A stretch of DNA of 62,966 bases, filler included, from Reticulomyxa filosa (GCA_000512085.1; 20 parts of 20 records of this genome joined end to end with filler, not necessarily neighbours in it), one strand, 5' to 3'. Shown: positions 3,153 through 34,525, counted from the whole stretch's first letter. Numbers and translations are program-made. Notes: generated by a model not told the origin, from the sequence alone.

Positions 3153-3548
3153 ATGAAACATGTAAGCCAACTGGTACGTAAATGTCAAGATTCAAATGCC
3201 TGTCAGTTGAATTTAATCGTATTTGTTATTACTTTAAGTTTTGCTGCTCTGGTTTATTCCGTTAACTTGGATTATTACAAAGCTGTATTGGCAGTTTTCG
3301 GGATTATATTTTTATCATCATTTTTTAGTATGGTCATAATGGTAATGCCACTTACCAGTTAAGTAAACAAATATTTTTATATTTTTTATTCGAATATTTA
3401 TTTATTGTTATTTCTGTTTGGAGGAAGAAATAATAATCAATATTATAACCAGTACGGTCATGATAATAATTATTACCTTTAGATTTATCAAAATAATGAA
3501 CGTCACATATTTAGACATTTTTCATCAAATATGGACTTCAATCAATAG
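3153..3548 (+). CDS. Small two-TM membrane protein, copy B (exon 2 has an in-frame TAG at 3480-3482; truncated or pseudogene)
   Basis: MKHVSQLVRKCQDSNACQLNLIVFVITLSF... is nearly identical to copy A. The intron sits at the same position (3358-3423). Similarity to copy A continues past the TAG to 3548. Confidence 0.55.
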
Positions 3549-4040
3549 TTTGATTAGATAAATTATCTTTTGATTTTTGTGTGTAATAAGAAAGAAAATA
3601 TTGTAATTAAAAAAATTAATTACAAAATAAGTATTACTTTGCCCAATTTTTAATAATTTGATTATCATTTTATTGATGTAAAGATAAATATATTATCAAA
3701 TATTTTTTTGAAAGTACCATTGGAATAAATTTATTCAATTCTTAATTCATTTTTATAATAATGATTATATTGGATTTAGTTTATACTTTCAAATGGAAAT
3801 AAACATGTACGAATACAACACATTAATATGACTAAAGCCTTATTTAGATTTCATTTCTTAAATTATACATGTTTCATTCGAAGCTTATCAAAAATTTATT
3901 TTAAGTGAAGTGAGCGAACTGTTTCGTGAAAATAATGCATAAAACTTTGTTGAGAGTTAGGAAGGGATTAAAAAAGGACTGAGAGAATAATCGAATTATC
4001 TATGTCTTAATAATATAAAGTTGTCAAATTGTTGGTCCAA

Positions 4041-4631
4041 ATGAATTATCATAATTTTTTCCTTCTCTTGGTGTTACATTTTTGCAATCACTTGCACTTC
4101 GGTCTGTTGCTTAAAAAAAAAAAGAAACTCGTAGAAATTTCTTTAATTTTTTTTTTATCGTGAAATAAAGGCAGCAGCCAATGCTCAGCCACCCATGACA
4201 CTGGATTGATTTGGGAGTTGTTAAAAGATGTTACTAACAAACCAGCAGAATGGAGCAATGTGTGTGACCTATGCCAATGGGATACTTCTCGTGTAGTGTG
4301 CGTGGATAGCTACATAGTCGCATTGGATTTAAGCAATATGTCCCTATCAGGTAAAAAGCACAAACGACAACAGCAAATCAAAAGATAGATACCATAACAA
4401 AATGAATGAAAATAAAACAAAAGGGTCACTAACAATATCGGATAATTCTGACAATTTTCCAACAAATTTGCACTATTTGTCATTTCGCAACAATCTGTTG
4501 AGTGGTGACATTAAAGAAACGTGGAAGCAGTTGCCCTCTGCCCTGGAATGGTTGGATCTAGGTAACAACTCGTTTACAGGTTCCATTGAATGGTCCAACA
4601 CACCACCTAATCTCCAGTACTTGTACTTAAG
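4041..4631 (+). CDS. Secreted or cell-surface leucine-rich repeat protein, 5' partial gene; exons 4041-4101, 4171-4350, 4424-4631
   Basis: Signal-peptide-like N-terminus (MNYHNFFLLLVLHF), a cap W..VCDLCQW...VVC...IVALDLSNMSLSG, and repeats LHYLSFRNNLLSGDI and LEWLDLGNNSFTGSI. The GT-AG introns keep the frame. Cut by the contig end. Confidence 0.8.
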
Positions 4632-4693
4632 GTTTGTTCCAATAATTATACAATACTCTGTTATCTGTACAAAGCAGTTACAAACCACGGTCT

Positions 4694-4726
<33 letters not shown>

Positions 4727-5080
4727 NNNNNNNNNNNNNNNNNNNNNNNNNNNNNNNNNNNNNNNNNNNNTTAATTAATTAANNNNNNNNNNNNNNNNNN
4801 NNNNNNNNNNNNNNNNNNNNNNNNNNTTGCAATTTGGTTTTTTTAAATTGATAGCACAGTAATCGATAAGCAAAAAAAGAAAGAAGTACAGAAGGATTGA
4901 ACAGATTAACACTTTGGAGTGAAAAAAGGAAGCTATACACATCCACGTAAAATAGAGAGAGCTATCGCGCATAGATATAAACACTAGCTGATGATAAACT
5001 GGGCTACGAAAGTAAAAGCGTGGATGTTGCAAAACGATTAGATATATTGAGAAAGCGACAATACAAAAATCTAAAACTAC

Positions 5081-5215
5081 GTAAACATAAATTCCATAAA
5101 TTACACAAATAATATGCTTTCATGAATTACTTTGAAATATTGACTTTGTATACTTCTTTTTCTAATTATTTTATCGTAAAAGATATTTAATGCACAAGGC
5201 ATGGATTGATATCAG
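5081..5215 (+). repeat. Dispersed AT-rich repeat, homologous to about 54716-54843
   Basis: Shared blocks cataaattac..aaat, catgaattact and tttatcgtaaaagatattta..gcatg.attgatat, in the same order on two different contigs. Confidence 0.65.
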
Positions 5216-6183
5216 ATAATTTATTTGAAATGTTATTAACATAAATATCAATCCATTGTTCATTGAATGCTTCATACAAATGTGATTTTGGTATTGTTTC
5301 ATTAAAACTGTAACACAGTTAGAAGTGCTTTGATTATTATTTTTATCAGATTTATCAAATATTTCATCAAATGCATCCAATAAACACAAATGAAAATATT
5401 TATCATATAAACAAGTGCGTCTCTGCAAATAGAATATTCAAAAGCAAATGGAAAGGAAACAGATGGTATTGAACCTTCAGACAAAAAGGAATTGAGAAGT
5501 TATATGTCCAGAAATAATTTAGAGTGAGAATTTCTAATTCTCGCTTGCAAATGCAAACAGGTTGATCGATTTCTGTAAGTTTGGATTTTTTTGAACAGAA
5601 AAATATTCAAATAGGAAGTTTCTTCATTTAATTGTCCATTTATAAAAAAAGATTTTTCCAAAATAATAATTTTATCATACTAAGTATTTGTACTCCATTT
5701 TTTTAGAAATTATTTCTTGAAAACCACAAATATTCAACTTCATAACAATTGTCAATATTCAAAAAGTGTGTAGCATGAAGACAAATTAGTGATTTAACAG
5801 ATTTACATAAGATAATTTGAAGACATCAAATGAAACTGATGAAAAAACATCTGGAGTGATTACATGTGATTTAAAAAGGAAATTAAAAAATTTAATTGAT
5901 ATGTAACATGAAACAAAAATAGATTTGATTGTATGACATGATTAACAAATAATAAACTGTTAAAAAATGAAATTCGAATCCAATGATGAATAAAAAATTT
6001 TATTTCAAAGATAAAATTAGGTTGAATTATTATCAAATATAAAAAAAATTAAATTTTTGATTATAAAATTTTCCAATTTTTTNNNNNNNNNNNNNNNNNN
6101 NNNNNNNNNNNNNNNNNNNNNNNNNNTTAATTAATTAANNNNNNNNNNNNNNNNNNNNNNNNNNNNNNNNNNNNNNNNNNNNT

Positions 6184-6829
6184 GATAACGATATTACTAA
6201 TAATATATTACATTCATTTTATTCACATTTTCCTTTATATAAACATTTAGATCCACAATATAGTGCTAAATTTATTCTAGTGTTACGTATTATTGAATTA
6301 GTTCAACAAAAACAAGAAAAATGTTTATTTTTTAGTCAATCATTAAATACATTAACTTTATTAGAATATTTTTTATCTTTATCAATGTATGGATTAAAAT
6401 TAAAGAAAAATATTCATTATTTTCGATTAGATGGATCTATTCCTTATTCTACTCGAGAAAAATATATAACAACTTTTAATCAAAATAATAATAATTCATG
6501 TTTCCTTTTTCTTATTTCTACTTTTGCTGGATGTCTTGGAATTAATTTACAAGCAGCTAATCATATTATTCTTTTTGATTGTACTTGGAATCCTGTTCAT
6601 AGTTTACAAGCTATATTTCGTTCTTATCGTTTTAATCAAAATAAACCGGTTCATATTTATCGATTAATTTGTGGAGGAACTATTGAAAATCATATTTTTG
6701 ATCAATGTTTAAAAAAGCAAAGATTATCTTTAAGAATATTAGATGAGAAAGAGACACGGATTAATTGTCAAAATAAATCATTTTATTCATTTTTATATAA
6801 TAATAATAATGATAATAATAATAATAATG

Positions 6830-6880
<51 letters not shown>

Positions 6881-7380
6881 TACAAGACTTTAATATATCT
6901 TCTTCTTTAGATTCAAATTCTATTATTGTAAAATTAGTTAATGAAAAAAAATCATTTATTAAAAATATTCAATCTACAGATAAAGAATTACAAGATTTTG
7001 AGCATTTAGCTTTAACTCAACAACAAAGATTAGAAATTTGGGAAACATTTCAAAATATAAATAAAGAAAAAAGAAAACATAATAATAATGAATATTATTA
7101 TAATCGTAAATTTCAATCTTGTCAAATTCAATGGATTCAACCAATTACAATAATTATAAAAAAATGTATTCAATGTGAAAAATGTCATAATCCTTTAACT
7201 ATAAATATAGAACCATGTGATATAGGAATGTTTGATTCAGAAAAATGTCAATTAAATGAAGGAATTGAATGTATTAAATGTAAACAAAAAATAATTTTAA
7301 ATATAAAAGAAGAAGAATTAAAAAGAATGAGAAAAAGATTTAGACAAATGATAAATGATAATGAAGTTAAGTTAAAATAA
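6184..7380 (+). CDS. SNF2-family helicase, ATRX/ARIP4-like HELICc lobe (5' partial), with a poly-Asn tract and C-terminal Cys-rich motif
   Basis: FSQSLNTL, YFRLDGS, FLISTFAGCLGINLQAANHIILFDCTWNP, QAIFRSYRFNQNKPVHIYRLI. The frame is open from the contig edge. Ends with CIQCEKC...CIKC. Confidence 0.88.
6797..6880 (+). repeat. (AAT)n coding microsatellite (poly-Asn)
   Basis: Direct AAT/GAT triplet run inside the SNF2 ORF. Confidence 0.9.
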
Positions 7381-8395
7381 AATATTATTATAATATTATA
7401 ATATTATANNNNNNNNNNNNNNNNNNNNNNNNNNNNNNNNNNNNNNNNNNNNTTAATTAATTAANNNNNNNNNNNNNNNNNNNNNNNNNNNNNNNNNNNN
7501 NNNNNNNNGTGTAGATATTGGTGTCAAACAACAGCATTCGCAAAATGAAATTTAAAACATATCAATAGTTTTCTTTAACACGATTGATGAAAATATTTGA
7601 TATTGATGATTGAATTAGTTAATGAAAATTGTGGATTATTTTTGAATCATTTTGTTGAAAATAAAATATGTTTCAAAGTAGTTGGAAGTAAAAACTTGTT
7701 TGCAATTTTGCTTTCGTTCTTTGTAGTGATTGTTACTGGTTTAAAGAGCAAGTTGGTCGTTAGCAATACTCCATTTTTTGGTTATTGATGTGCTCCTCTG
7801 CATAAAAACAAGGGAAAGAGGATTGAGTACAAAAGATAGAAAGCGAAAGGATATGAAAAGAAATGACAAAGGAAATGATTGTTTGGTATTGATAACAGAG
7901 TAAAGAAAAAAAATACAATACTTTGATCGGGTCATTTGAGTAGATTTATCAATTTAGATAAATGATAGCCTTGTATATGTCAAAACTATCCAGTCACTTG
8001 TTCTGAAAACATTACTCACAGGCCAAATCTTCCAATTCTAAAATCATAAGGGACGACATCTTCCCATCTTCTTTCTTTTGGTTAAGAATATTTTTTCAAC
8101 AAAACCAAGTTTTCTGGAATGACACTACTTTGTGGAACAACCTTTGCAAATGAAATGTTAATTCCTGCTCAAAATAAGTATTAAAAAAATGTAACAACAG
8201 ACTTAGAGTTGTCAAAAAGAGTTAGTCCCTTTTTTTAACTATTCTTTCGAAGAAAACGGCAACACAGAATCCAAACGATGATGAAGGCACAAAAAGCTTT
8301 TTGATTTTGGTTGATACTACAAAGAGTTGAGCGAAAACGTGTTTTTTTCTTTTTTTTTTTAACACAACTTTAAATACTGCTGTGTTTCTGAACAG

Positions 8396-9222
8396 TTGGA
8401 TCAAACAAGGCGACAAGTTTTTTTGCTTATGAACATAATTGATTCAATGGTATTCGAGCTTGTATCTATAAAGAAGACGATTGCAAAAACGAGTGAGATC
8501 TCGATGATCATTGTCATTGCTGTGACTTTTGTAATGCTTATTTTAATTTCATTGGTTAGTGATCGAAGAACCCATACATCACCTATTGGTTCCGAGTTAT
8601 TTCTATTTATTCTGCAGGTAATCAGGTAAATTGAGTCATTGTTTAATATTTTTTTTATTATAACTGAGAACATACTTTTTTTGTACGTATTTAATTTACA
8701 CAGCGATGGCAATATTTGTGTTTATCTTGCAGCTAGCTCCTTTGATGCCTGGCTTTAGTAGTTTGCTTTTTGTTTGTTTTTTTTATTAGCTACGTATATT
8801 TGTTCATGTATTTTTTTACAAACACTTATGTACATATTTTTTTGTTTGATGAATACGTCTGTCTGACCCTGAAATAGCAATAATTATGGTCAATTCGATT
8901 ATTGCTGAGAAACGTAAGAAAATCCAAAGTGAAATGCCGATGCAGTTCAGTATTTGTTTTTTACTTTTTTTAGATAAAGAAAAAAGTTACTTTTTTTTTT
9001 TAGGTTATGGATTTAATGTGCGTTACTTGTGATGCCAATGAAGTGGCAACATCAGAAGATAAAAAGATAGTTTGCCAGGCAAGGAACAATAACTTATTTC
9101 AAAATGCCTGCTTGGAAAGTCATAATATTTTTGTTAGCACTTTTTTAATCCCGTTAGGCAATGGATTGCTTATATGGTATTTGCCTGGTTATGCTTCCGC
9201 AAGTACTATGCGCAAAGGTTAA
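8396..9222 (+). CDS. Putative multi-exon membrane protein; exon structure uncertain
   Basis: Hydrophobic exon-like segments (ISMIIVIAVTFVMLILISLV; AMAIFVFILQLAPL; IFVSTFLIPLGNGLLIWYL) separated by T-rich intron-like stretches. No family recognised. Confidence 0.4.
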
Positions 9223-10474
9223 ATGTTGGGAGGTTTTTTGTTTTGACGAAAGCTATTTTTGTAAATTGGAGGGGAGGGGGGAAAAGCATTTTACAGCGTG
9301 TTTTTCTTAGTTCTCATTTTTTGTGCATTTTTGTTTGTTTTTACTTTTCGCTTTTTTTTGGATTTTACTGGTGACACTTTGTCAATCTTTTGAATTGCAA
9401 TGAATATTATTTTTTTGGAATGACATCAAAACAAACGAAAGCCATTCTTTTTTGATTTCAGCCATGCTACCAAGTCAAATATTCTTTTTTTTTTTTTACC
9501 CAGAAAATGGCAAAAAACATGTTGCATTTCATGTTCTGATTGTTGGATCACATGAAACAAATGTGGGTCATTTTTATATTTTTTTGAACCGATTATTATA
9601 AAAAAGTACTTTTTTTTTTAGAAAAATGTAGTTAAAAGGGGGATGTTGTTCCAAATTTTTTATTTTTTTCTTCTTAATGGTTGTTGTTGCTTTGCAACTT
9701 TAGCCGCATTGACTAGGATCTTTGTGACTATGTGAGACCAATCGTTGCTTTTGTGAAGTCTTGCTATAATCATTGGGCCACCTTATTGTCAATTGATATT
9801 TCTACAATCTACTTTCGTTCGTGCTTGAAATTCGCGGATGCCTGCATTGAGATATTTAGTATTCAAATGGCAAAAGAAAAACGGTCGAGCTTGTTTACAA
9901 GTGGTATATACGAAGGCAAGGAAAAAAAGTGAGGACATTATTAACGTGATTGCCATTTCTTGCGAAGCATATGTTATGAATGAACATGGGATATGAGTTC
10001 AAGCAATACTTGCGTTCGCTTGTTATCGTGGAAGTCGAGAGACACGCAATTGCTGAGCGCAGCAGAGGCGGCAGGACGTGGAGTGTCGATGAATCGTGAC
10101 ATTGTGGCGTGGGACACCCAATTGCGAGTGTAGTATCAATGGGCATTTCCCGAGACGAAACTGGCAGTGTATTTGGACCCATTGCTACCTCGCATTGCAG
10201 AGATCGACGGACCAAAGTCGCGGCATGCGAGGCCATACATGCCATTATGGTGAAAATAGTGTCGGACAATGCAAGCGATCCCAATATCGACAAACACAAG
10301 GCAAAGACACTCGGAATATCACAAAATCTATTCCCATTTGTTCCCTTGTCCTGCTCCGATTGGCCGTCGACACCNNNNNNNNNNNNNNNNNNNNNNNNNN
10401 NNNNNNNNNNNNNNNNNNTTAATTAATTAANNNNNNNNNNNNNNNNNNNNNNNNNNNNNNNNNNNNNNNNNNNN

Positions 10475-11509
10475 AAAAAAAAAAAATTTGCCTAACCCAA
10501 AAGGTGTTGAAGCGTCTGTTGCCTTGGGGATCCCAACATGACTTGAGTCGACTTCGGGCAGTTTCATTCCGAACCGTGAATACATTTGATTAGCGATGCC
10601 TGTTGTGGTGAGTGGCTTGTTGGGGAATATTCTATTCGCATGTGTCGATATGTGAATATTAGGTCTCAAGTCGTGTGACAAGCGCTTCTCTTTGCTCTCT
10701 ATGTGTCCATTCGACTTGCTGTGTCCATTCAACTCTTTCGTTCCGATTTGGGCCAATGATATTTTAAAATTTGTTTCTTTTTGAGTCAATTGAACTTTCC
10801 TGGAACTCAACAACGCTTTATTCTTTTGTTGATTGTCAATAGTTTTATCATTTATTTTATTATTATTATTATTATTATTATTATCGTTGTTATTACTGTT
10901 TTTTATATTATTATTGTTACCATTGTCATGAATAAGGGTATGACTATTTCTGTCATTGTCAGTGTCTTTGATTTTTTTGCGCTTTTGCAACGAAACTCGC
11001 GCACTTTGGCAAACTAGAGATGGCCTCGAATCCCACTTATCTCTTGTTTGTTCTTTGGATGAAACGTTTTGTTAGGCTTTTCCACTGATGGTGAAAGAGC
11101 ATCTAACAATGGAGAACATATGACTGTATTTGTGTCTTCTTCACTTGTCTCCAACTTTTCTTCATTTTCATTGTCATTACTTTTATTGCTGTCCACCTTT
11201 TTCACTTCCTTCTGTTTTAATGTTATCATTGGGGAACATTGCTCTGTTTTACTTGTCCACATACTCGTTTCTTCTCCTTCTTCTTCGGTATCTGTGATAT
11301 GTGCTTGAAGTGATGCCACAATCGACATCGATAACTCTCGCGACTCACGATTGCCATCAATTGTTATCTCCGCGTCACTTTCAGTACCTGTCACACAGAG
11401 AGAGAAGAGAGAAGAGAGAGATGCATCTACCATCCACACGATTTTCACGCACAACAAAACTTGGAGAAATTGCTTCTAAGTTGATCGATTGTGGAATACT
11501 ATTGGTCAT
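10475..11509 (-). CDS. Hypothetical low-complexity hydrophilic protein (3' partial; one short intron near 11390-11430 and one apparent frameshift near 11040)
   Basis: ATG at 11509 (MTNSIPQSINLEAISPS...). The intron ends tgtgacag. ORFs 11014-11457 and 10427-10990 read as one product across a frameshift. Confidence 0.5.
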
Positions 11510-11937
11510 TGGAAGATGATAAAGAAAGACAAAGATCAAAGGGAATACGTTCTTTTTATTTCACTCTGACAAGAGTACAACTAGAGCATATGAAATGCTT
11601 TTTCTTGTGTTTTTTTGGTAAATTTGCAAACTTTCGACAGAAGAACTTTGCAAAGAAGGAGAATATTGCTTTAATAAATCTGATGTATATAATAGTTGAT
11701 ATTCAATTTTATAGAACTGCCTAAATTTTAAATTTTTTTGGAAATTTTCGTCTTTTTTGTTGTTTGATCGTTTTGTGCATTTTTTTTTTATTATTATTAA
11801 TTTTTCTTTTTGCATTTGCAACTTTTATTAAATTTATTGTTTGCGTTCTTTTTTTGTTCTCTGAAACGGTTACAATAACAAAACTCTCGTCTAAAAAATC
11901 CTTAAGTAATTAGCAAATATATGCATGAAATTTGAAT

Positions 11938-14226
11938 ATGAACAATTATCTCTACGCGAACATGCCACAAGCGTCTGTTGGGATGCCATCAGCGCATAAT
12001 ATAAATAGTAATGTGGAAGTAACTAAAAAAAGTACACTTTCCACTTTGTATGAGAATGGAAATCCTAGCCTTCAATCATTTGGTTTCCCAAGCCCGCCAA
12101 ATGACATTCCGAACACTATGTCTCCTGCAAACAATCACAACTATCCTGCAAATATTCCCTTTCCGGAAAGTTACCCCAAGTTGATTTCCCCAATGGGAAG
12201 ACATATGGATATGATATCAAACAGAACTACATTATATCCTTCCATCCCGCATGGATGTATGTAGCGCCAGAATACTACGTGGTGGACACCATGAAATCCC
12301 CATCGGACATAAGCTCAAAGTCATTGTCCTCGTATTCCTCGATCCATCAGCAACCAATGAGAAAGCGCAAAAAGCATGCGAAAAAGGCAAAGCATGGAAA
12401 GAGCAGTGAGAAAAAGAACGCAAGACCTGTCAAGCAAGAGCAGAGGAAAAGTAGTGGTCGCAAAAGAATGGACTATTTGTTAGCCAACTATGAACTACGG
12501 TCAAGATTAGCCCAGTACTCAGTTCAAACACAGATTTCTAAGCTCCAGTCTCCCATTGTCTTGCATTCTGAAAACACTATTGCTCACAAAGTACGTATAC
12601 ACTTTTTTAAAAAAAAAAAAAAAAATCAATGAAGGTTAAATTCCCCCCTTTTTTTTTTTTTTTTTCGTAATCCATCCTGATTAGCTTAGCAAGACATTGA
12701 GCAATGGACTAGAACAAATGCTAATGCACAATGGCTACTGCGTCTTTGAAATCATCTCGGTTGTGCTAATGATCAATTGGACACTCTGCTATATGACAGT
12801 GTACATTGACAGCGTGTGGCTATGTGTCGTGCACATGCTAATGGTACTTTTATTTGTCACGCCGTTGCTATTGGCCGCAAATCTAAGTATTATACGCTAT
12901 GTTTCCACTACATCATATGGGCTATATTCTCTTGCCAATCATCTGGCGTTCTTGATCGTGTATCTTTATGCCTTTCGCTCCAAAACACATGTCGGAACTA
13001 TTTGGTATCAATATCTTAGTTTATGTACACATATTATGCATATATATGTACGGAGCTATTTTTTTATTTTTTATTTTTTATTTTTTGGTTTGAAGGATAA
13101 CAAGAATAAATTTGATCAATTGTCTTTAACGTGTTTGTGTATGTATGTAACGTAATGTACTTTTTATAGTGTGTATACGTAATGTGAATATAAAACATGC
13201 GCAAAATTGGTAATTGTAATGTACACACATTTTTTTTTTTTTTTTTAGTTGTGTGAACATTTGCCCTTTTTTTTTTTCTATGCAATTTTTTATAATGGCA
13301 AAAAAAAAAAAAAAAAGGGTGAATGCGATTTGCATGGTTGTAATTAATTTCTCATGGCTGTGCATGGATGGATGGACGATCCGGTCAGTGTTCTTGAAAG
13401 TGTGTTCGATGTGGTATCCGACGGTGTACATGATAATGGTCCTTCGGCTGTATTTTGGAGATAACTCTCTGGAGAGTGTCGGCCACGACAAGGCACTTGA
13501 AGTCCAAGACAATGACAAGGTCGTGTGCGTGCTGCTGTTGGTGTTCGGCACGAATATGGCACTGCTGTTGTATCGAAATGCCATGTCGCTCACGTTTGGA
13601 CAACAAGACCGGTTTTCTTGTTGCTTTGTGACCCCCACCAAATACATGCACGTGCCAAACTCCAACAAAGATATTGAATACGAGTTCAATTCCAAACGTG
13701 GAGGACAACTGCCAGCTGCAGCTGCAATTGCTTCTGCAGCTGTCGCGTCCTCCAATGTCCCGGCGGACAGAGAAGAAAGTGCTCCTCTGCGACGCAAAAG
13801 CTATTCCAATGGAAACTGCGATGCAAACGTGGAACCCATCGTTGTGATGGATAATAACACAAGGCGTAATAGTCTCAAACCACTTTCACCACGTTTTGTT
13901 TGGGTGCTTTTTTTTTTTTTTTTTTTTTGAAGTTGCGAAAATTCATAAATATTGTGTGCATTTTGAAACAAAATTAATGATATGGGGGGAGTTCAGGAAG
14001 CGAGTTTTCAATCTTTGGAAATGGTCGGGTGCATACAGTCGTTGTTGAAAGTGAAGATGATAATAGTAATGCTAGTGAGTGTGAAATGGGAACTTTGACC
14101 GCAAATGAGTATAGAATAGACACAGGGAACATCCCCACCACCACGGCCTTGGCTTCCATGAAAGAAGTTCCACTGGAAAAGGATAATTATTCAGGAAGCG
14201 ATAGCGAAAACGAATACCAATTTTAA
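11938..14226 (+). CDS. Hypothetical multi-pass membrane protein with disordered N- and C-terminal tails (multi-exon; apparent frameshift near 12255)
   Basis: Consecutive + ORFs at 11932, 12255, 12697, 13253 and 14029 with intervening introns. About 7 hydrophobic segments lie in 12730-13600. Confidence 0.6.
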
Positions 14227-14725
14227 GAAAACATCAAGACAAAATGCAATATTGTGTTATTTCCAATTTTTTTTTTTTTTCTTTTTGTTTTTAGTTTTAA
14301 ATTTTTTTTTCTTTTTGCATAAATTACCGCACTTTACTTTTTGGTTGGAGTTCGGTTGAAATGTGAATGCTTTCGTTGGTCAATGTCAAAAGGTTCTGTT
14401 TGCTTTATTAAAAAAAACTTTTTCATTTTACACAAATTTTGAAACGCATTCGTTCTTCACAAGATTTGGACACAAGACTCCAATGAAATAACTTACCAAA
14501 AAGAAGGCCATTGCATATCTTATCACAGCAGCCCAATTATTAAAGTTATATGAAACAGTACTCATCGGGTCCATTTGGACGTGTTTTTTTTTTGCAAAAA
14601 AAAAAAAAAAAGGGGCAAGGATTTGCGTTTTTTTCTTAAAAAAAGTTACTGAGCTCTTATTTTTGGCGGTCTATCGAATTGTACAAAAAAAGCATACTGC
14701 GGACATTGTAATACTTGGACTACGG

Positions 14726-16978
14726 ATGTCAAGCAGTAATATCTCACAAAAGGAACAAACGTCGTCGGGAGAGTTAGCAACTCGGTGTGAGCGCATTCTC
14801 AATACTTTTCGAAATGGTACACATAATGCATTTTCCTTTGAAAATGTATTTTCTTGTCAGTGTGTCAAATAATTTTGAATGGGAACGTATAAGCTAAATT
14901 GGAGAAGTTGTGATGTGTTAGCGCAAGAAGACATCAAGCCCACAATACGCGAATTGGGTGCAATATTTGCAAGATATATTAACAAAGACATGACAAATGA
15001 AGAATTGAGTTACATTCGACAAAGCGTATTGCATAATGTTTCCATTGTGCTAATGAAGCGAGAATACACGTTTAAGTAATTTATGACCAATACTTTTTGC
15101 TCATGCATGTACTTTTTTTTTTTTTTTTTTTTTTTGTATTGACAGAAAAGAAAGGGACACAGCCAAATCAAACACATAAACACATATACGTGTATTTGAA
15201 TATGTACGTACATGTCATAACGTATAAACAAAAAAAAAAATAGACGTTTTCAATATGACTACGAAATGGCAGATGAAGTGGAACAACTGGTACGACAGTT
15301 GATCCAAATTGCAATTCCAATGATAGTAAACGAAGAAGAAGAAAAAGAAAAAGACTCGGAAATAGGAATGCAAATACTCTACTTTTTATTAAATGCACGC
15401 TCCAATTTTTACCAACAATACGGCCATGATTGGGTATGTAGAGTGAGTGTGTTTTCACCAGCATTGAGGTCTTTTTTTTTTTTTTTTTTTTTTTTAAGTA
15501 CATGAATTGAAAAGAAGAAGATGATTATCGTTGTAATCATCCCTCCCTCTGTTCCCTTCTTTCAAACACATTACAGAGACAGCAGCGTGGGACACCCTTG
15601 AGTGAAGAAAAAGTAAAAGAATACGAAGAGTTTCGAAAGGGTATTCGGGAAAACGTGGAGTTGGATTACTTTCATGAAAACCGTTGGAAAGTTTGGAGAG
15701 CCCCTACCCCCCCCCCCCCCCTTATCAACGATCCTTTCATTTGTCAATTTTTTTGTTGTTGTTAAAAACATGCTAAAAAAAAAAAAAAATATAATAGAAA
15801 GGTACAGTTCGTCAAGTGCGACAAGTACAAAATGCAACGAATGGAACAGTGACGATGTTGGACATCGGATGTGACGTTGGACCATCTCGTTCGACACTAA
15901 GTGATAAGAGCGACAACAAGGACAATGGGATTGTGAACCCGTGCACGTTCGACACGGAGCATTACGGCAGCTATGCCCCTGCAGGGACGCAAGTGAAGCA
16001 GCTGCGTCCATTGCTGTCCAAGTGGAGAGCAGAGCTGAGTCCCAAGTCGCAATGCGACTGTATGGATTGCACCGACAAGTGGTACACGTGCACAGTGGTC
16101 TCGGTGGACGAGCTGACCAACAGTGTCAAAGTCAATTACGATGAGTGGAGTAGTAAGCATGACGAGTGGATTCCAAGGTTAAGATTAACCTGTGAGCAAG
16201 TTTTTTTTTGTTTTATTGTACATGTTCAAGAAGGAACCACAACTTGCAAATTGAACTTTCAAAAAAAAAAAAAAAATATATATATATATGTATATATGTA
16301 TGTACAAATAAATTTATGACAATGTTCGGAGTGACACAGAGATAGTCGTCGAATTCAAAAGCACAAGTCTCAAGCCAAAGGTGGAAAGGACACCGGCGGG
16401 GTCTTCCGTCCTCTCTCCCAACTGGTCTCAAAAATGGACGAGGATGAGGACGAAGGCGATCCCAGTGATGACACGCTCTTTGCAGTGTATCGAGTTAGGA
16501 TTCAGTTTCTTCATCTAGCTTTGGGTAACATATACATATATATATATATATATATATACATAAAATGACACAGGGAGACGTGGGAGAGGTGTCGTTCCAT
16601 TTGGTGTCCGCGTGGAATGCCTTTGGCCGTGCAGGAGGCTTCCACGCACTTGCAAAGCGATTGTCCCACTACAAAGCAAACACATCCATCAGAGACGTGC
16701 GACTGGTGATGCTGCTCCTGTCGCGGTCCATTCACACGTTCACCCGTCGCGCCTATCAAAAGTGCATTTTGCCTTTGGACACGTCGGCGTGGGCCATCCT
16801 CGACTCCATCACAGACGCCGAAGTGCAAGTCTTGAACCCAAACGCAGTGGATCGAATCCTTTTGTCCATTCAATGTTTGTTGAAGCGAGGAAGATCTATT
16901 TTGCAAATTGCACAAGCGATTGAAACCTTTAGCCTTACAATGAGTTACTTATATACATATATATATATATATATATGT
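14726..16978 (+). CDS. N-terminal part of a large USP34/USP24/USP9X-like deubiquitinase with a Tudor-knot/chromo-barrel-like domain (multi-exon, 3' partial)
   Basis: DCMDCTDKWYTCTVV...VKVNYDEWSSKHDEWIPR (barrel) and SAWNAFGRAGGFHALAKRL, resembling the NxFGxxGGF motif of large USPs. The catalytic domain is not on this contig. Confidence 0.55.
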
Positions 16979-23540: not shown

Positions 23541-23888
23541 AAAAATGAAGGAAAAAGAAAAAGAAGAAAAAGAAGAAGCAAAGCAAGAGCGAAAGATGAT
23601 TTGTCGCAAAAATAGGCACGAACAAAATCTGGTTTGAACAACTTGTGTGTGTGTGTATGTGAATCAATACAACCAAATTGTGCTTGGATGTGCCATGTGT
23701 GGATAGAAATTAGAAGTGTATGAACAGAAGCTGGATTTGGAACAAAAGCGCAATAAGCAATTGGAACAATACATTGAAACCATCGTCACAGGTGATGCCA
23801 AATCCTCTGACAAAATGCCGAGCGTTGAGTACACGCAATTATGTACACACATATGTACATAAGTATATATGCATAATATATATATGTG

Positions 23889-23921
<33 letters not shown>

Positions 23922-25447
23922 GGGCGGAGATACGTTTAGCTTCGGTCTCAGGTGGATGACATTGTTTTGAATCTCAACGCGATTCACACGAATATACAAG
24001 GGTTTGAAAAGTTTGACGGCGTGATTCAAAAGTTGCTGGAGTTGGTTATGGACGCACAAAGAATTGTTAAAAAAGACCCCTTTTTTTTTTTTTTTTTTTG
24101 TGATTAGTGGTGTGCGCACATACGTACACGCAATACACATATGCACATAGATACAGCTACAAACACAAATGCAAATATATAAATATATATAAATATATAT
24201 ATATAAATTAAATAAAAGAGTGTAAGCGTATTGAATGAAATGACGTCGAAAAGCGATGACTTACTAAAAGTCCACGAAGAGCTAAACTTGTGGTTGTACT
24301 CGAAGCGCCTGCAGGATCTGAAGACACTCGTCCCACTCGCGCCGAACTTGGATACTGGCAACAGCTGCGCGTACCAAGAAATAACGCACGAGTCGTTGAA
24401 GTGGTCGTCCAAGATCGACCAGATCGTCACTCGCTTGCAGCAGCTGCGCAAAGACATTCCTCAGTCGACCACTACGTACCAAGTTAACTTCCAATCCAAA
24501 GGCAGTCCAAGTCAAACCTCTCAAGTTATTTGCTTTTTATAAAAATATATGTATATGTATATATATATACATATATATACATATATATGTATACATATGC
24601 ATATATACATATATATATATGTATATACATATATGTACATATATGTATATACCTCTTCCAAACATAGAATAACAATCTTGCAAAATCCTCTCCCATATCG
24701 TACTCGGTATCGCCATCGTCATACTCACCCCTATGGACGGCAAAGAATTTGAACATGTCGACCCCGCAGGAACACAAGGTCAACGTCGCCGAAAGTGCGG
24801 CGCCCGAGACGGACGCGACGAAGCTCGCCCCTCAGACGTTCCACTTGGACAGCGAAAGTGAGGACGAGAGGGAGGCCAAAGCGTTCACTACGGAGCAGGG
24901 CTCTGGCGCGGTATCGACGTCGGCGGCCAAGACTTTGAAAAACCATCCCATGCAATCGGCCGCCAGTCAAAAGCTCTCCTCTCTGCTCGCCAAAAAGAAG
25001 CCGGTGGCAGAGGGGAGTTTGAGTGATAACGAACATAACAAGCGAAGACCACAGCCCAAGTCTCAAAGCAAGGGCAACAACGACGGTGATGTCGGTGATG
25101 ATGACGACGATGACGATGATGACGATGATGATGACGATGACGATGACGACGACGAGGAATTAGAGGAGCATGGCAATCAAAATGCCGGTGCGGGATCTCG
25201 TGATGATCGTAGTGATTACGTACCCTTTTCTCGACCTGGTGTAAATCCCTTCTTACCTAAACTGCGTGCCAAACGCGCCTCCACTGAAGCGTACAGAGAT
25301 GTCCTCAAACGGTTTAGTAAAAACGATGAACAGATCTTAGATGATGTGCTCAAAGATGCCTTGCTCGAAAGTGATCCAAATAGCACGTCCCATCCCAACA
25401 CAATGTCACACACCGAACAAAATCCCAATCCTTTAGAATTTTCCTAA
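23541..25447 (+). CDS. 3' part of a hypothetical coiled-coil protein with a poly-Asp tract (multi-exon, 5' partial)
   Basis: GC-richer exons (about 23706-23825, 23940-24065, 24220-24525, 24669-25447) separated by (TA)n-rich introns. A (GAT/GAC)n run lies at about 25095-25155. Confidence 0.6.
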
Positions 25448-26420
25448 GACGTTTTCTAACTTTTCCTTTTTTTATTGTTATTATTTTTAAAAAAAAAAAA
25501 TTTCCCTTTCCCCCTTTTTCTTTTCATATTTGGTGTCTTCTCGCTGCAACTTTCTCCAACATTTTATCAAGTCTTTGTTTTGAATGCGTATACGGTTGTT
25601 CAACCCCCCCCTTTTTTTTTTTTGGCTCATTATCTTAAAAAAAAAAAAAACTGGTTGTCATTTGTGCATATGGGTTGGACATATTCTAGTTGGCTGTCTC
25701 AAACGCAATGTGTGGAATTGCTTGAGTACAAATTATTCAATTTTTTTTTTTTCAGTATTTCATCATCTTTTTGACAAATATAAAATTAATAATATAAATA
25801 AGTTTACAGTGTTTGGGTGCTTATTAGAGACCAAGTCTCGATGCTTGAAAGTAACATGAGTTTCATCCAAAAATGCGTCAGAAAGTTTTTTTATGCGATT
25901 GTACATGCGAACATTTTAATGTCATATATTTCAATAACATGTAAGGCCTTCCTTGAATCTGGTTTTATTATCGACTATTGGTAATTTATCTTTATTTTTG
26001 GCGATGACTGGTCTTTTGTCAATCCTAAATTGGATGACGTTGATCAATATTTCATTAACAGTATTTCGTGTAGCCAAGTATGCATTTAGAAGTTAGCAAA
26101 TAATGTATTATAAGGAAAAACAATAAATCAAGTAGATACTTGGAATACTTGCAAACCAGCTGAGAAAAAAGCAACAATTTGCACAAACTTTATACTAACA
26201 CAGCGGTCATGCAGATTTTGTTGAAAAAGAATCTCAATATAATACTGCGGTGGATTCCTTAGTATCATGCCATTTTTATATTGTTATTCCGCTAATGTTA
26301 TGAATGCCGCTAGAGTAACACACAATGTTTTGTCTCACAAATTCCAACATTCTACGCCCAACAGGAAATCTTAAAAAAGAATACAGACCCATTATAATTT
26401 AATCTAGAGAAAAAAAGTTA

Positions 26421-29400
26421 ATGGCCAGCCAGAAAAAAATGATTGAAGAGTATACTTTGGAGGAAATAAGTTTTGGTGATATATCCGAAGTAAAAGATGA
26501 AACAACGAGTATAAACAAAGAAACCGAAACAAAAGAAAAGCTGAAAGGATATTACAAATCTAAAGACAAGTTGATCCCCCTGTTTGACGATCATGACCAA
26601 TCCATTGATACTTGTTACATTCGATTGGTTCTTTTAAGCCAACAGCAACTCAATGAAGGAAAACAGCAAATACAAGATAAAACAGTAAACAAAGAGAAAA
26701 TGAAAAAAAGCGAGGAGAACGAAGCATGGCCAAATACATTGGACTATTCATTGATGCATACCAGCAAACAAGGAACAATGGAATTGCAAGACATTTGGAA
26801 AGATGAAGAGAATGAATCGATACGTGTCGTCACATTAGTATTCGTGGAGAAGCCGGGAGTGGGAAGAGTGTATTAGCGCAAAGAATTGCATATTTATGGG
26901 CAAAAGATGGAATGTGGAGTGATCAATTTCAATGGCTGTTGCATATTCCTTTGAGAAAAATTGTCAGTATTTTTGATGATGAAAAGGATAGCAAGAGCGA
27001 TATCAATATGGAAAGTAAATGGTCGAAAATAATGAATGAATTGAGTATTCCACAATGGAATGCAAGTGATACAAAATGTGTAATGCGTTGTATGAATGGA
27101 TTGTTATTGTTATTGGATGGATTTGATGAAATTGCAAACCAAGTCCATAAAAGCAGTGGTCTAAGACAATGGTTGCAATATTGCACTGCAGACAGCAATA
27201 ACTGTCATGTGATAATAACAAGTCGTCCGAATGCAATGTGTTCTTATCTAAATAATCCAAGAATGTTGAATGTGATTGGATTTCAATCACAGGATATTCA
27301 CAATTATGTGCGAGCGTATTTCCAAAATATGATAAGTGGAGATAATTATGACAATGGCAAGTATCACGCAGATTTGCTAATTCAAAAATTGAGCAACAAT
27401 CCGAGCTTGAAATTGTTAAGTCACACACCTTTGTATTTGCGCTTGTTTTGTTACTTGGTAAGACAACAAATCAAGGAAACGAAGGAGGAAGAGAAAGAGA
27501 GTAAATCATCACTGGATAAATTGGACAACATTTCACTTTCAAAATTGTATCAAACATTATTGGAAAGTTATATGCAATGGAATTGGATTAAATTAAATGG
27601 AACAAAAAGCAAATCAAATGAACAATCCATGTTTGGCTTTTTTGCAATGGAAATTGATTATTTGTCACAACTTGCTTGGGAAGGATTGAGACATGGACAG
27701 GCTGTCATTTCTTGTGAAATACAACAAAGGATATTAGATATTATTAAATCAAAGTATCCCCGCAAACATATTTCGGAAATTTCTCAATGGTCTCGAATCA
27801 ATTCATTTGGATTTTTGCAAGGACAAGAATCTGTCAATTCAACACATCCAATGGACTCTGTGTATTTCCCTCATTTGACATTTCAGGAGTGGCTTGCTGC
27901 CTATTATTTGGTCCATTGCTTGTATCGACCTGTTGGAACAAACGATCATCAGAAAGTGCGGTCTGTTTTAATCAATAAATCACTCACTCCAAAATTTTCT
28001 GTAATGATACCATTTATGGCTGGAATATTATATGATAATATCCAAAATGAAAAAAGCCCATCGGCATCTGGCTTGTTGTATTTTTGGAAATTGTTGCATT
28101 TGTTACCATCTCAAGTCACTCCTGTTCATCAAATGATGTTACATATGCGTTGTCTGGACGCTTGTAAAGCAGATACAGATAGTCCATTTCTTCCATCTCA
28201 ACTCCGAAATTGCCACGAAATGCTCATTGCCTCTTTCAAATCATTGCTTGTCGCCTGGATCAATTTTGACAAGGATATTGGCTATGTATATTACAAAAAC
28301 TATTATGGATCGTATACGCGGACCACGAACAGACCCATGGACAATGTGATGGAATTGTATTTACCCAATTTCCGTCATCTCCTTATTCATCCAGTCATCC
28401 ACATGTGCATTATCGACCAAATTAAGTTATTCCAAAAACAATGGAGTGTAACCATTGATAATCATGGATTAATAAAAGATAGGCTCTATCTATTAACATG
28501 CTTGTGTATCTCCACAGAGACTGTAAACATTGTTGTACAGTGTTTTAAAGAGACATTGAGCTCTCTTTATCCTATTAACCGACGCATGTGCGAAGAGGCA
28601 TTATTGGCAGTGGGAATGAAATTGAAAGAAGACCAATTGGACATCATTGTAAAATTTTTGCTAGATGGGTTCCACGATAAAAGCGCGCATTCAATATATG
28701 TAGGATCACTTGAAAAAATGGCATTGAATTTGAATGAGAGACAATTGAGTGGTATTTTTGAGCAATTGATGAATGAATGGAACAGCAACAAAATACATTT
28801 TTGCAGCGCGTGTGCATCTACACTAGCAACAATTGCAGTAAAGTTGGGCGGAAGACAATTGGACGACGCCTACCAATATTTAACAAACAGACTACATAAC
28901 AATGATGAAACGAACTTTTGCACATGTGCAAGCTCGCTCGGAAAAATTGCAATGACACTGAATGAGAAGCAATTCAATGATGCGTTCATGATTTTGAAAA
29001 CTGGTTTCACAAAACAAGATGAAGAAATTCGTAGAACATGTGCAACAATTCTGGATCAACTTTCATCGAAGTTGAATGAGAGACAATTGAATGATGCCTC
29101 CCAATGTTTGATGAATGAAGTAAAAAGTGAAGGCAAGTACTATTATTGGGAATACATCGCAGCACTTGGAAAAATCGTGACGAAATTAAATGGAACACGG
29201 TTTGATGAAGTCATGGCCTATTTGAAACAAACGTTGAGAGATAAAGATAAATGCGAGTACACTCGTAAAGAATGTGCACAAGCACTTGAATTGCTTGGTA
29301 TGCAATCAGATAAAGTACAAATTGACGATATTTTCAAATGTCTAACAAACATGTTGAAAGATAATGAGAAATATGTTCGTCAATCATGTGCCGATGCTAT

Positions 29401-32400
29401 TGCAAATCTATCCTCCAAATTGAATGAAATGCAATGCGATATTCTTGTGGAATGTATTGTTGATGGATTTAGCAATAAAAATGGATACTGTTGTCAAATA
29501 TCAGAACGTCTGGTGAATGCAATGGCAATGCAATTGAACGAGAAGCAGCTTTGTGATCTTTTTGCCACTTTGATAGATGACTCCAAACATTCCAATGACG
29601 ATGTCTGTAAATCGTGTGCAATATCGATTGGCAAACTCGCTGTCAAGTTCAATCCAAAACAATTCGACAATGCCTGTCAATGGTTGAAGAGCAAATTGCA
29701 AGACGAAGATAGAGTCACAGATGGAACAGTTCGTAGCTCATGTGCAGAAGCGCTTTCAGAAATGGCAAAACGATGCAATGCAAAACAATTGGATGATATC
29801 TGCAGCTGTCTTTTGCATGGCATGCAGGATACACATTGGCTTGTTCGTGGATCATGTGCAGCAGCAATTGAAAACATTGCAATACAATTGAATGAAAAAC
29901 AATTGGATGATGCTATGAACTGCTTAAAGCGTGGATGTAATAATGAAGATCTGTATTCTCGAATATCGTGCGTAAGAGCATTTGGTGGAGTCATACTTGG
30001 AGAATTGAAAAGTACGCAATTGTATTTCGCTGTAAGCGAGTTGCTGCAGCTATTAAAATGTCAAAATACTTTTGTCTGTGAAATTGCAAACAAAGTACTA
30101 TCGACAATGTCCGAGGACATATGGAGACTTGTGACAATTGAAACTTTGAGAGAAAATATGGATCTAAAACTGATCATGCAACTGGAAAGAAAAGAACAGG
30201 GACAACAACCGACAGAAAAGACATCAGTAAGAAAAGCATCAAGTTCCGTTTGGGAATGGTTTTTTGGTAATACAAAAGAAAGAGTTGAACAAAAACAAGC
30301 ACTTGAAACAAAAGTAATGAACAACAATCTTGAAATGAAAAGACTAGCTTTTGCCTTATCGGTGTTCAATCCTCGTATTCAATTCAGTTTCAATGATAAT
30401 ATCAGTCCAGATGCTTTCAATGAGTTAATACATTTGTGCAATGAACAGGCATTTGAATGGGATTTCCCAACTGAACATAAGTGGAGTGATTATAATAATA
30501 TTCCATATCCTCAGTTGAGCAATGACGAAATAATCTTGCAATCACAGCAACTTTTCAAGGATAATAAATGCCAAGGACATTACAACGCCATTCATAAAGC
30601 AGCGCAGTCGGGGGACATCTCACAATTGAAATTTGAATTGCAACAACATCATCATATTGACATCAATAATTCATTTAATGAATGTGGACAAACTCCATTG
30701 CATTTAGCTATCAATAACAAACATTGGGATACTGTTCGTTATTGTATTGAACAAGGTGCATGGATTGACGTCAGAGAGGACGCTGTAGATATCAAAACAG
30801 CACGAACTCCTTTTGAATATGTAATAGAGCAGACAATGAGAGCAAAAAAAGAAAAGAATGAAAAAGAATATTTTGAGATATTGGAGACGTGCAAATGGAT
30901 ATTGAGAAAACGGACTATGTATCCATTGAAGCGAATTGAATATGCGATTGATTATGTGAAAGATAAAATAATTGATGCAATAAATGATGAAAGCTATGAG
31001 ACATTGTTGCAAGAAGGTGCAACTTTCTTGCTGGGAGTGAATGAGAAAGAATTAAAAGAAACATTAATCCAAAATAATTTATTGTATTGGGCAGCTGGTC
31101 GAAATGTGGTGTCAATTACAGCGGAAAATTCAATTAAAAGAAAATTTGATAAAGGATGGGCTCCAGTACCATTTTTAATTAATCGAATATTTTTGTTATT
31201 TGAAGTATGCGTTCAAATGAAACGAGAAGGAAGACATTTCATTGGATTGCCAAGACGTACAACGACATTTGAACAAGTATATGAAAAAGGGATAAAAGAA
31301 TTGCAAGTGCAATTAACAACATATTGGGATTACATTGTCACCGAGGAATTCAAACATAAATTCCCGAATTTAATTGATGACTGGAGCTGTAATGTGGTGG
31401 ATCGTTTGATGGGTTTAAAACCAATTCCATTGAATTCATGTTGTGAAATAAGTTTGGTGGTTGGTCATGAAGGTCATTGTATTTATTTAAGTTTATGTAA
31501 AACATCTGACTCTATTTTGGTGCGAGTAGACAATCGATGGATGGAAACAGTTCCATCGGATACACCTCATCCAAGAGATGAACATAAATTGATACAGCCT
31601 TATTTGACTGCATATTTCCCATGGAATGGTGCGAACATCGATCAAAATAAAAAATGGTTGAAAGAGTATATCAAAAATGCAACTCAATTGAGAGATAGTA
31701 ATAGCAATATAAGTATGAAACATTTATATTGCAGTGATGGTAATAATAAACAATCACTCAATAATTCTCTTCCTCCTCGTGAGGGAAGTTTGCCATCTGT
31801 TGTGAAACATTGGCCATATCGTCCAATTCAAATTGATGCAAACAACTGTTATTTGCGAAGTCACAATGTAGGATATCGAGTTCGCTTAGGTGATGACATT
31901 TATCAATGGTTTCGTAATCAAGAGAGCAAGAGTTTTGTATTTAATAGGAGCAATTACAACGAAGCCATCAATAACAAATCGAGTACCTATGAAAATGCAA
32001 ATTCAGTAAAAGGCGGAAATTCATCAAATACATATTTGTCATCATCTTCAAATCTTCCAACACACTCTGAACTGATGAAATTACTTTCCAAACAATTGAA
32101 AGTTCCATATGACGAAGTGTACAATGGAATAGCGGTAGAGCAAGCTCTTGTTGCAAAAGCAAACATTTATGCGATCCAAAAAGGAGCGTTTTATCGTCGT
32201 GACGAATCAACCAACCAAACTTATTTTCAATTGTATCTCAGCTTAAGTGAACGGTCCCATTTTTATCAAGTTTATCATTCTCAATTTCCCAAACTTATTC
32301 AACACTTCAAAGAAATTGATCAAAATTGGGTCCAATATTTCTTTGATACACATGTCTTTTATTATCAAGTACTCCCTTCGTTGTTTTCGTGTCCTTACGC

Positions 32401-32410
32401 AAGTTTGTGA
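26421..32410 (+). CDS. NLR-like STAND protein: NACHT NTPase, WHD, HEAT repeats, ankyrin repeats and a putative CE-clan-like cysteine protease (about 2000 aa, intronless, one frameshift near 26820)
   Basis: Walker A ISIRGEAGSGKS (about 26835-26870) is in frame with ORF 26912-32410. Walker B LLLLLDGFDE, sensor IITSRP, TPLYL and WHD FPHLTFQEWLAAYY follow. Then 38-aa HEAT repeats (LNEKQLDDA..CL..G..D....VR.SCA.A) and ankyrin GQTPLHLAINNKHWDTVRYCIEQGA. Confidence 0.9.
28530..30120 (+). repeat. Tandem HEAT-repeat array (about 114-nt / 38-aa period, roughly 13 units)
   Basis: ttgaatgagagacaattg recurs at about 28730 and 29072 (3 x 114 nt apart), with variants at about 28958, 29418, 29532 and 29887. 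Confidence 0.85.
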
Positions 32411-32945
32411 TTTTTATTTTTTTATGAATTACTAAATTTTAATCCAAAATTTATCACTCACACTACATATTCCTATCCAAAGCAAAGCAGAGGAAAAAGT
32501 TGACATATTTATAAAATCAACCCTTTTTGTTGAAGGATAAATTAATTAAATTTAAAACAAATAAAACAATATGCAAGGAATGATATAAACAATCAAAATA
32601 TCTTTCATTTAAATAAAAAGGGTTGTTATTTGAGTATCTGTACAACTGTACAAATTTAGAGCAATGAACTTATTCAAGTAATTCAGTAGTGCAAATTTTC
32701 CGATTTTATACAGAAACCACAGAGATGTTTGTTCCACTTTTATAGGCTGAAAGAAATAATGGGCCAAGAGTAATGACATTTTTTGCACATATTATGAAAT
32801 GTCTCAAAAATATGAATTATTGCTAAATCGATGATCAAGATTTACACAGTGACTTGAAAAAGATAATCACTAGACATTCATGTAATTGAAAATTAGAAAC
32901 AAAATTAATACAGTTGTACTGATATTTTTTGATGTCTTTATAAGT

Positions 32946-34131
32946 TTAAACGCATTTTTTGTATACAATAATAGGGCCACTTTCGTCATATTCGCCTTTT
33001 GTAATCCACATTTCTTGAAAAGCGTCGATATTACTCAGGACACTTCCTCCAATCCATGCACCATATTTCCTTTCAGGAGGAGCAATAACTTCAATTTGCG
33101 TCTCAAGCGGAGCTAAAACAGTAAATGTGTTAACAAAGCGTTTTTGGATATTAGGAAACATAGTAGTACCACCACTTAAAACAATATTACGAAATAACTC
33201 TGCACGAATATCGGTGTCGCATTTCATGATACTTTGATAAATCAATGTATCAATTCCTTCGCATTTTTGTTTAATTAAATGAGGTGAAAATAATATTTCA
33301 GAACATTGGAATTGCTCTGATCCAATAGTGATTATTTGTCCATCAGGCAATTCATACCTTTTTCAATATTACTTAATGTCTCTGCTTTCTTTAATTCAGC
33401 TTCATAATCTATTGCAACATATGCAAATTTTTCTTTGATATGACGAGCTATTTCTCCTTCTGTTCTAGTTGCAAATGAATAGCCTTTTTTTGTTAACATT
33501 TTCATCAAATAATCAGTTACATTCTTTCCTGCCAAATTAGATCGTAAAGTACCATGTGGTAACGCATATCCTTCATAAATTGGAATTGAATATGTAGTAC
33601 TATCACCAGCATCTAATACAATTCCAGTTGTTCTTCCACTTGCATATAAACATAATACTGCTTGAATACTTAAATACAATAAAGGAACTCTGAATGTTTC
33701 AAACATAATTTGAGTAATTTTTTCTCTATTCGGTTTAGGAGGAAATGGAACTTCAGTTAACAACACTGCGTGTTGTTCAGGTTGAATACACAGCTCACTG
33801 TTACATTTTGATAAGAAGTATATATTTCTTTTAAAAATGTGAAATTAAGCTTTTTTTTTAACTTATTAAAAATATGATGCCAAATTTGCTCCATGTCATC
33901 CCAATCTGTGATAATACCATATTTAATTGGACATTTTAAGTCCAAAATATCGCTTTTTGTTTGTGCTTCATCACCAATATATACATCTTTTTCAGTCGTT
34001 ACACCTTCATGTTTGGATCTTCCGACAACAGTTGGAAATGCTACTCGCGGAAAATTCTCACCACTAAAACCAGCTTTCATCATTCCACTTCCATTGTCTA
34101 TTACCACATTTCCTATCTCATCTTCATCCAT
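32946..34131 (-). CDS. Divergent actin / actin-like protein; intron 33798-33862; 1-nt frameshift in the A-run near 33360
   Basis: [105 protein letters not shown]. Confidence 0.93.
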
Positions 34132-34525
34132 GATTTTTTGAAAAGCAATAATAACAACAGGAGGATATACAAAAAAAAAAGGTTTAACGTTCATTAAATT
34201 TGATGATTTTAAAAATATGGATGTTAAGAAATTGTGTATTGGTTATGAAAGTATATAAAAAATACGAGTACTATTCAATTTAAAACTCAGTCAAAAAAAA
34301 CTTTTTAATAAAAATCCCATCAATATTATCTTTGAAAGATGGATACAAGTGAAAACAAATGCGAAGAGTCTTTGACTACGGACAACACAATTACCTTTGA
34401 GACTTTAAATTTGAAGAAACATTGGNNNNNNNNNNNNNNNNNNNNNNNNNNNNNNNNNNNNNNNNNNNNTTAATTAATTAANNNNNNNNNNNNNNNNNNN
34501 NNNNNNNNNNNNNNNNNNNNNNNNN

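Follow-up and report, generated by a model that had tools for sequence, protein, structure and literature searches.

The window analyzed here is a 62,966-nucleotide stretch of DNA from the freshwater naked foraminifer Reticulomyxa filosa (GCA_000512085.1; 20 parts of 20 records joined end to end with filler). The part at 23541-34425 holds a single 5.5-kb open reading frame (ORF), 26912..32410 on the plus strand, whose 1832-residue product shows 100 % identity to the C-terminal 1832 residues of X6MV23, annotated as "NTPase [Reticulomyxa filosa]" (P0001, 1977 residues). Adding 145 to the ORF numbering gives the X6MV23 numbering, and q1-543 corresponds to ORF residues 1290-1832. A sequence-only reading of the window had described an NLR-like receptor in which NACHT, HEAT, and ankyrin (Ank) regions are followed by a globular region of ~330 residues, a putative CE-clan-like cysteine protease effector. 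Pfam confirmed all three of the preceding domains, and the gene is organized as follows.

26421..26822, plus strand: N-terminal piece of ~134 residues preceding the NACHT domain, out of frame with the main ORF and homologous to the "...LDYSLI...QDIW..." sequence found 5' of the P-loops of paralogs
26820..26828, plus strand: frameshift site, where the homology to paralogs switches frame
26828..27328, plus strand: NACHT NTPase core (Pfam NACHT, E 1.1e-9, ORF residues 55-139; P-loops of paralogs)
29162..29962, plus strand: Pfam-detected part of the HEAT array (HEAT, HEAT_2, HEAT_EZ, and related families; ORF residues ~750-1017)
30590..30775, plus strand: ankyrin repeats (Ank_2 4.5e-7, Ank 5.6e-7; ORF residues 1227-1288)
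30779..31423, plus strand: helical hairpins extending the Ank stack, a beta-hairpin, and three long helices (q1-215), as predicted by the AlphaFold2 model
31424..31984, plus strand: cysteine-protease-like core (q216-402), from motifs, model, and fold match
31985..32062, plus strand: Asn/Ser-rich low-complexity linker, predicted to be disordered (AlphaFold per-residue confidence, pLDDT, <50)
32063..32407, plus strand: mobile alpha/beta tail domain of ~115 residues (q429-543), found separately in other proteins

The NACHT domain possesses a P-loop (GEAGSGKS, 26846-26869) and a Walker B motif (LLLLLDGFDE, 27101-27130) and is followed by C-terminal repeats, which identifies the protein as an NLR-like NACHT STAND NTPase. 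The ~40-residue periodicity of the HEAT array runs beyond the Pfam limits on both sides. The ~134 residues before the P-loop matched no Pfam domain, i.e., no recognizable N-terminal effector or adaptor is present, and a Pfam search at E<=10 with the last 536 residues, corresponding to the ~540 unannotated residues, returned nothing real and no CE model of the Peptidase_C48, YopJ, or adenain type. What had been taken for one globular region resolves into three parts: Ank-like helical repeats with a beta-hairpin, the protease-like core, and the separate tail domain.

The proposed active-site residues of the core were located exactly, to the base, where the sequence-only reading had put them. His1522 (q233; 31475-31477) lies within GHEGHCIYLSL, in the ORF segment VGHEGHCIYLSLCKTSDSILVRVDN; Asp1540 (q251; 31529-31531) and Asn1541 (q252; 31532-31534) lie within LVRVDN; and Gln1640 (q351; 31829-31831) and Cys1646 (q357; 31847-31849) lie within PIQIDANNCYL. 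CE-clan peptidases of the Ulp1/SENP/XopD type have the order His, Asp/Glu/Asn, Gln, Cys, with ~17-19 residues from His to the acidic or amide residue and Gln positioned six residues before Cys. The core has this order, with an H-to-D spacing of 18 residues and a Q-to-C spacing of 6.

The conservation of these residues, which the earlier reading had left to be checked in paralogs, was confirmed by alignment. Among homologs with less than 45 % identity, the His, Asp, and following Asn are each present in 29/29, Gln in 26/31, the Asn of the Asn-Cys pair in 31/31, and Cys in 30/31; among the R. filosa-like copies, His is retained in 57/60, Asp in 54/56, Gln in 53/58, and Cys in 54/59. This near-universal conservation places the motifs above chance. 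Tyr236, Arg249, Gly365, Arg369, and Gly371 (q numbering) are also invariant or nearly so. In the R. filosa paralog P0009, both the His (to Tyr) and the Cys (to Ser) are replaced while the rest of the domain is retained, a double loss which suggests that the two residues act jointly; P0009 may be an inactivated or regulatory copy. A second histidine, His1553 (q264; 31568-31570), is found in the loop after the Asp strand, as TPHP here and as D..xH in bacteria, and is invariant in the bacterial subgroup (alignment A4, 14 sequences).

ORF residues 1290-1832, used as the query of an exhaustive HMMER search, matched 162 proteins. A profile search with the 110-sequence alignment A1 added ~100 further matches, all of them R. 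filosa fragments, and provided no bridge to the Legionella proteins discussed below. The numbers indicate a very large paralog expansion of the core family in R. filosa, largely as fragments on short contigs. The matches divide the query into the motif-bearing core (~q215-400) and an independent tail of ~115 residues (~q420-536). Core homologs, with 25-35 % identity, are placed at the C-terminus of several architectures: NACHT-(HEAT)-Ank plus core (P0056, P0070, P0077, P0081, P0086, P0088, P0142, P0147, and P0155), TIR-NACHT-HEAT-core-tail (P0151, a metagenome protein of 2318 residues), U-box-Ank-core-tail-tail (P0063), ubiquitin-TPR-Ank-core-tail (P0115), and Sel1 repeats plus core (P0119, P0122, and P0126). 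Elsewhere the tail is found by itself or repeated in tandem, and in company with U-box, USP/UCH, Ank, TPR, or Sel1 domains; the tail-only proteins include U-box proteins (P0055, P0068, P0082, and P0124), a USP/UCH protein (P0137), and others with Ank or TPR. The P-loop starts at residues 92-216 in the paralogs, and in most family members ~90-220 residues devoid of any domain precede it. Given such short, domain-free N-termini, the C-terminal enzyme-like core is the sole candidate output in most of the family.

AlphaFold was run on the single sequence (pLDDT 36, discarded) and with alignment A1, which gave a model with a pLDDT of 89.6 and a predicted TM score (pTM) of 0.76. In this model, His233 opens the strand 233-241, Asp251 closes the next strand, 246-251, and Cys357 opens the helix 357-370, in agreement with the two beta-strand-like segments earlier envisaged between the His and the Asp-Asn pair. 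A beta-hairpin (q112-122) follows the helical hairpins that prolong the Pfam Ank repeats. Rows 1-7 of the Foldseek search are the Legionella effectors LegA15/AnkD (7KJ6, 7EW8, 7XQL) and AnkH (LegA3; 6MCA), and the structural alignment to AnkH spans model residues 14-476 against chain residues 40-397. The next long matches, with 144-180 residues aligned, are all CE-clan proteases: XopD (5.6/153), NEDP1 (5.1/164), NopD (5.0/144), SENP7 (5.0/180), and SENP2 (4.7/159). The fold check that the sequence-only reading had called for thus found AnkH/AnkD first and the CE-clan proteases next. The overall AnkH/AnkD fold, Ank repeats packed on a protease-like middle domain with a helical cap, is reproduced in the model, where 30779..31423 would constitute the N-terminal half of an AnkH-like module. 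Two other folds were considered and rejected: a permuted NlpC/P60 fold (LRAT-like H...H...NC), of which no structure appeared in either exhaustive fold search, and a caspase-like fold (clan CD), for which the motif is G-H rather than H-G and no fold match was obtained. A shape search of the ESM Atlas returned only noise (TM<=0.24), and a language-model search returned unnamed clusters, with YopJ (0.79) and ShET2 (0.78) below the trust level and of use only as leads.

AnkH consists of four Ank repeats, a helix plus beta-hairpin, a "cysteine protease-like domain" closest to XopD (clan CE), and a cap domain; H243 starts a strand, D258 ends an antiparallel strand, C324 precedes a helix, and the family motifs are rGHa, D/NRg, and GNCSWANV (PMC6712400). 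The model of the R. filosa region shares the same strand and helix placement of His, Asp, and Cys, and the beta-hairpin. The motifs of the core, GHC(I/L)Y, R-x-D-N-(R), and Q-x5-N-C-x5-N-(V/L)-G, are AnkH-like in kind and placement, not identical. AnkH differs in being a 460-residue secreted effector, whereas the module here ends a eukaryotic NACHT-HEAT STAND NTPase, and in R. filosa the stretch from Asp to Cys is longer by ~40 residues and the tail domain is a different one. The two show no significant similarity in sequence (hhalign probability <4 %). With the CE-clan proteases (Ulp1/SENP, NEDP1, XopD, NopD; YopJ, adenain), the core shares the order His-Asp-Gln-Cys and both spacings, and these are its sole long structural matches after AnkH/AnkD. 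Like NLR and bNACHT STAND immune proteins, the R. filosa protein combines a NACHT domain, in which both P-loop and Walker B are present, with a helical arm and C-terminal repeats; unlike them, it is devoid of an N-terminal effector, has HEAT and Ank in place of LRR, WD40, or TPR repeats, and carries an enzyme-like domain at its extreme C-terminus.

We therefore regard the flagged region as probably the core of an AnkH/AnkD(LegA15)-type module, Ank repeats plus a cysteine-protease-like domain, that is distantly CE-clan-like and ends a NACHT-HEAT STAND NTPase. The CE-clan-like assignment is supported at the level of predicted fold and motifs, via the AnkH family: residue order, conservation, and the AnkH/AnkD fold agree with what had been proposed, and no sequence-profile match to CE families was obtained. 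We do not count the core as a demonstrated member of either clan CE or the AnkH family.

The core would be a hydrolase with a Cys nucleophile, and its likeliest activity would be that of a protease or isopeptidase on a ubiquitin-like or other host-type substrate. This activity is favored because the family conserves a Gln six positions ahead of the Cys, where papain-like and CE enzymes have their oxyanion hole, and because fusions of the module and tail to ubiquitin-system domains recur among homologs. The Ank repeats might hold or present the substrate, as has been proposed for AnkH, and the NACHT/HEAT part might gate the core or concentrate it by nucleotide-dependent oligomerization. An immune role, with an effector switched on by NACHT oligomerization, is at this stage purely conjectural.

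Several observations weigh against this interpretation. Searches of the PDB sequences with phmmer, using the single protein, and with profiles from alignments A1, A2, and A3 gave no match. An AnkH-family profile (A5), built from metagenome genes collected by the published GNCSWANV motif, hits 6mca at 2e-182; hhalign of A1 or A2 against A5 gave one weak local match, which is insignificant (P 0.011-0.019, probability 2.5-3.9 %), although in it the GH motifs of the two families coincide and Asp251 falls on the AnkH Asp. Kinship to AnkH is therefore structural, suggested by the model with suggestive motif agreement, and is not established by sequence. His, Asp, and Cys would be adjacent in three dimensions, judging from their secondary-structure positions in the model and from alignment ranges. 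AnkH exhibited no protease activity in vitro, and its pocket is closed (PMC6712400). LegA15 is reported to bind and hydrolyze GTP, which requires Cys361 (the equivalent of the Cys in the core), Lys367, Arg291, and Arg408, whereas H268A has little effect (PMC9757750). No protease or deubiquitinase activity has been shown for any member of the AnkH/AnkD group. In P0151, the TIR domain occupies the canonical N-terminal effector place, so that the C-terminal module stands where the sensor normally does. Finally, the gene is frameshifted as assembled and is without one intact reading frame.

The frameshift lies at the start of the NACHT domain. The P-loop is in the main frame, located 5' of the first ATG of the ORF and preceded by stop codons, with no ATG between the upstream stop and the P-loop; the N-terminal ~134 residues are encoded in another frame (ORF 26421..26876). 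Paralogs retain one continuous frame through "...QDIW...(I/V)RHISIRGEAGSGKSVL", and the homology to them changes frame between ...ENES(I) and RHISIRG. Since the paralogs are in a single frame, the X6MV23 gene carries a frameshift at ~26820-26828, ~7 codons 5' of the P-loop. Within 26820-26870, the public X6MV23 model bridges the break by a ~30-nucleotide GT..AG "intron" that joins "...RVVTL" to "SVLAQ...", and the missing Walker A motif (P-loop) of the annotated protein is an artefact of this artificial intron. The earlier estimate of ~135 residues before the P-loop fits the short N-termini of R. filosa paralogs and most bacterial homologs but holds for this gene only when the frameshift is read through. 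A search of sequencing runs for the locus returned only "synthetic metagenome" contigs, covering 13 % of sampled words.

The copy may be a pseudogene or may contain a 1-nucleotide assembly error just 5' of the P-loop. That X6MV23 is a dead copy in a large decaying repeat family is a possibility to be taken seriously, albeit one we consider unlikely. The position of the break, the absence of an ATG before the P-loop, and the predominance of fragments on short contigs in the family are what such decay would leave. An actin gene ~0.5 kb downstream, on the minus strand at 32946-34194, is likewise split over three overlapping ORFs in different frames, which match positions 2-88, 97-248, and 264-409 of the actin profile. 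However, the actin breaks may be short introns as well as frameshifts, a single-nucleotide error in a draft assembly would account for the break in the NACHT gene, and 3' of that break 5.5 kb of ORF is uninterrupted with all catalytic-type residues intact.

It is doubtful, although somewhat plausible on architectural grounds, that the Ank-core-tail module is instead the ligand-sensing or bait end of the protein, with a pathogen factor or ubiquitin-like proteins as possible ligands, or that it is a scaffold with no catalysis of its own. The C-terminal region is the usual sensor in STAND/NLR proteins, P0151 fits this arrangement, the AnkH pocket is closed and the protein inactive in vitro, and the mobile module is joined to repeats of many different types. 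On the other side, near-invariance of His, Asp-Asn, Gln, and Asn-Cys at 25-35 % overall identity resembles catalysis more than binding, the joint loss of His and Cys in P0009 points to their cooperation, and most family members are without any other candidate effector domain.

We rate a LegA15-type GTPase as less likely still, and indeed improbable. The core would then be an atypical nucleotide hydrolase with GTP in the cleft, in which the Cys activates water and no peptide bond is cleaved, as the GTP hydrolysis reported for LegA15 might lead one to expect. Comparison by motif offsets, rather than by superposition, suggests that the LegA15 residues are not kept: Arg291 corresponds to the invariant Asn252, Lys367 to Asn363 or the invariant Gly365, and the basic positions Lys367, Arg291, and Arg408 appear to be non-basic in the R. 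filosa core. AnkH itself has Glu at the position of Lys367 (consensus NCSWANVE). Invariance of both His and Asp would be unexplained if the His were dispensable as in LegA15, and the p115 host-target context of AnkD/LegA15 has no counterpart in the R. filosa protein.

Homologs of traceable source come from intracellular bacteria of protists: Holosporaceae "Namur", Ca. Jidaibacter, a Midichloriaceae metagenome-assembled genome (MAG), and a Proteobacteria MAG. A 53-kb Tara contig (L001) carries three consecutive large NACHT/HEAT/Ank genes of the core family at 1-14893, together with genes for EF-P, HU, RNase E/G, an ATP/ADP translocase (TLC), and the chlamydial histone-like Hc1; by its gene content, it resembles the genome of a marine Chlamydiae-like bacterium in which these genes have expanded in tandem. 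The complete NACHT-HEAT-Ank-core-tail architecture is present in Chlamydiae-like, Midichloriaceae, and Holosporaceae genomes and is not specific to protists. In an unrooted maximum likelihood tree built from the core, the R. filosa copies fall into a single clade (support 100/99), which groups with HEAT-bearing bacterial and metagenome sequences (support 100/98). The tree fits a single whole-gene exchange, in either direction, followed by expansion; the family probably passed as a whole gene between intracellular bacteria and the foraminifer and then expanded. Bacterial contamination of the R. filosa assembly, with the gene being a symbiont effector, is very improbable. In its favor, every homolog found outside the foraminifer is bacterial or lies on a contig of bacterial appearance. 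Against it, the actin neighbor on the same piece points to a eukaryotic contig, a small symbiont genome would hardly yield the more than 100 diverged paralog fragments of this one assembly, and the R. filosa copies form one tight clade.

A more ambitious scenario, which we put forward only tentatively and think unlikely to hold in full, is that the foraminifer and obligate intracellular bacteria exchanged the whole gene, which in the foraminifer grew to more than 100 members as a new kind of NLR, with a C-terminal ubiquitin/ubiquitin-like isopeptidase or protease as the output triggered by NACHT oligomerization. If this were true, the host would employ an effector-type enzyme of pathogens as an immune executioner.

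Literature searches found no paper joining Reticulomyxa with NACHT and, for NACHT, endosymbiont taxa, and the cysteine protease-like domain, none describing this fusion. The fold class itself has precedents in AnkH/AnkD and, distantly, in clan CE; new here are a family of distinct sequence, its joining to STAND NTPases, a tail domain with ubiquitin-system links, and the foraminiferal expansion. To our knowledge, the AnkH/AnkD cysteine-protease-like domain had until now been recorded solely in secreted effectors of Legionella-type bacteria, and whether it is a silent protease or a GTPase is a matter of dispute. A far larger, sequence-distinct sister family with a strict His/Asp-Asn/Gln/Asn-Cys signature, recurrently fused to STAND NTPases and ubiquitin-system domains, offers new handles on the role of the fold. 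The family also represents a large unannotated NLR-like expansion in Rhizaria with an enzyme at the "wrong" end, and its nearest relatives in Chlamydiae, Rickettsiales, and Holosporales make it a test case for host-endosymbiont gene flow and for non-canonical NLR outputs. Upstream of the gene, a plus-strand ORF at 24749-25447, for which no significant Pfam family was found, has as its product an acidic, low-complexity protein containing ~25 Asp residues in a row.

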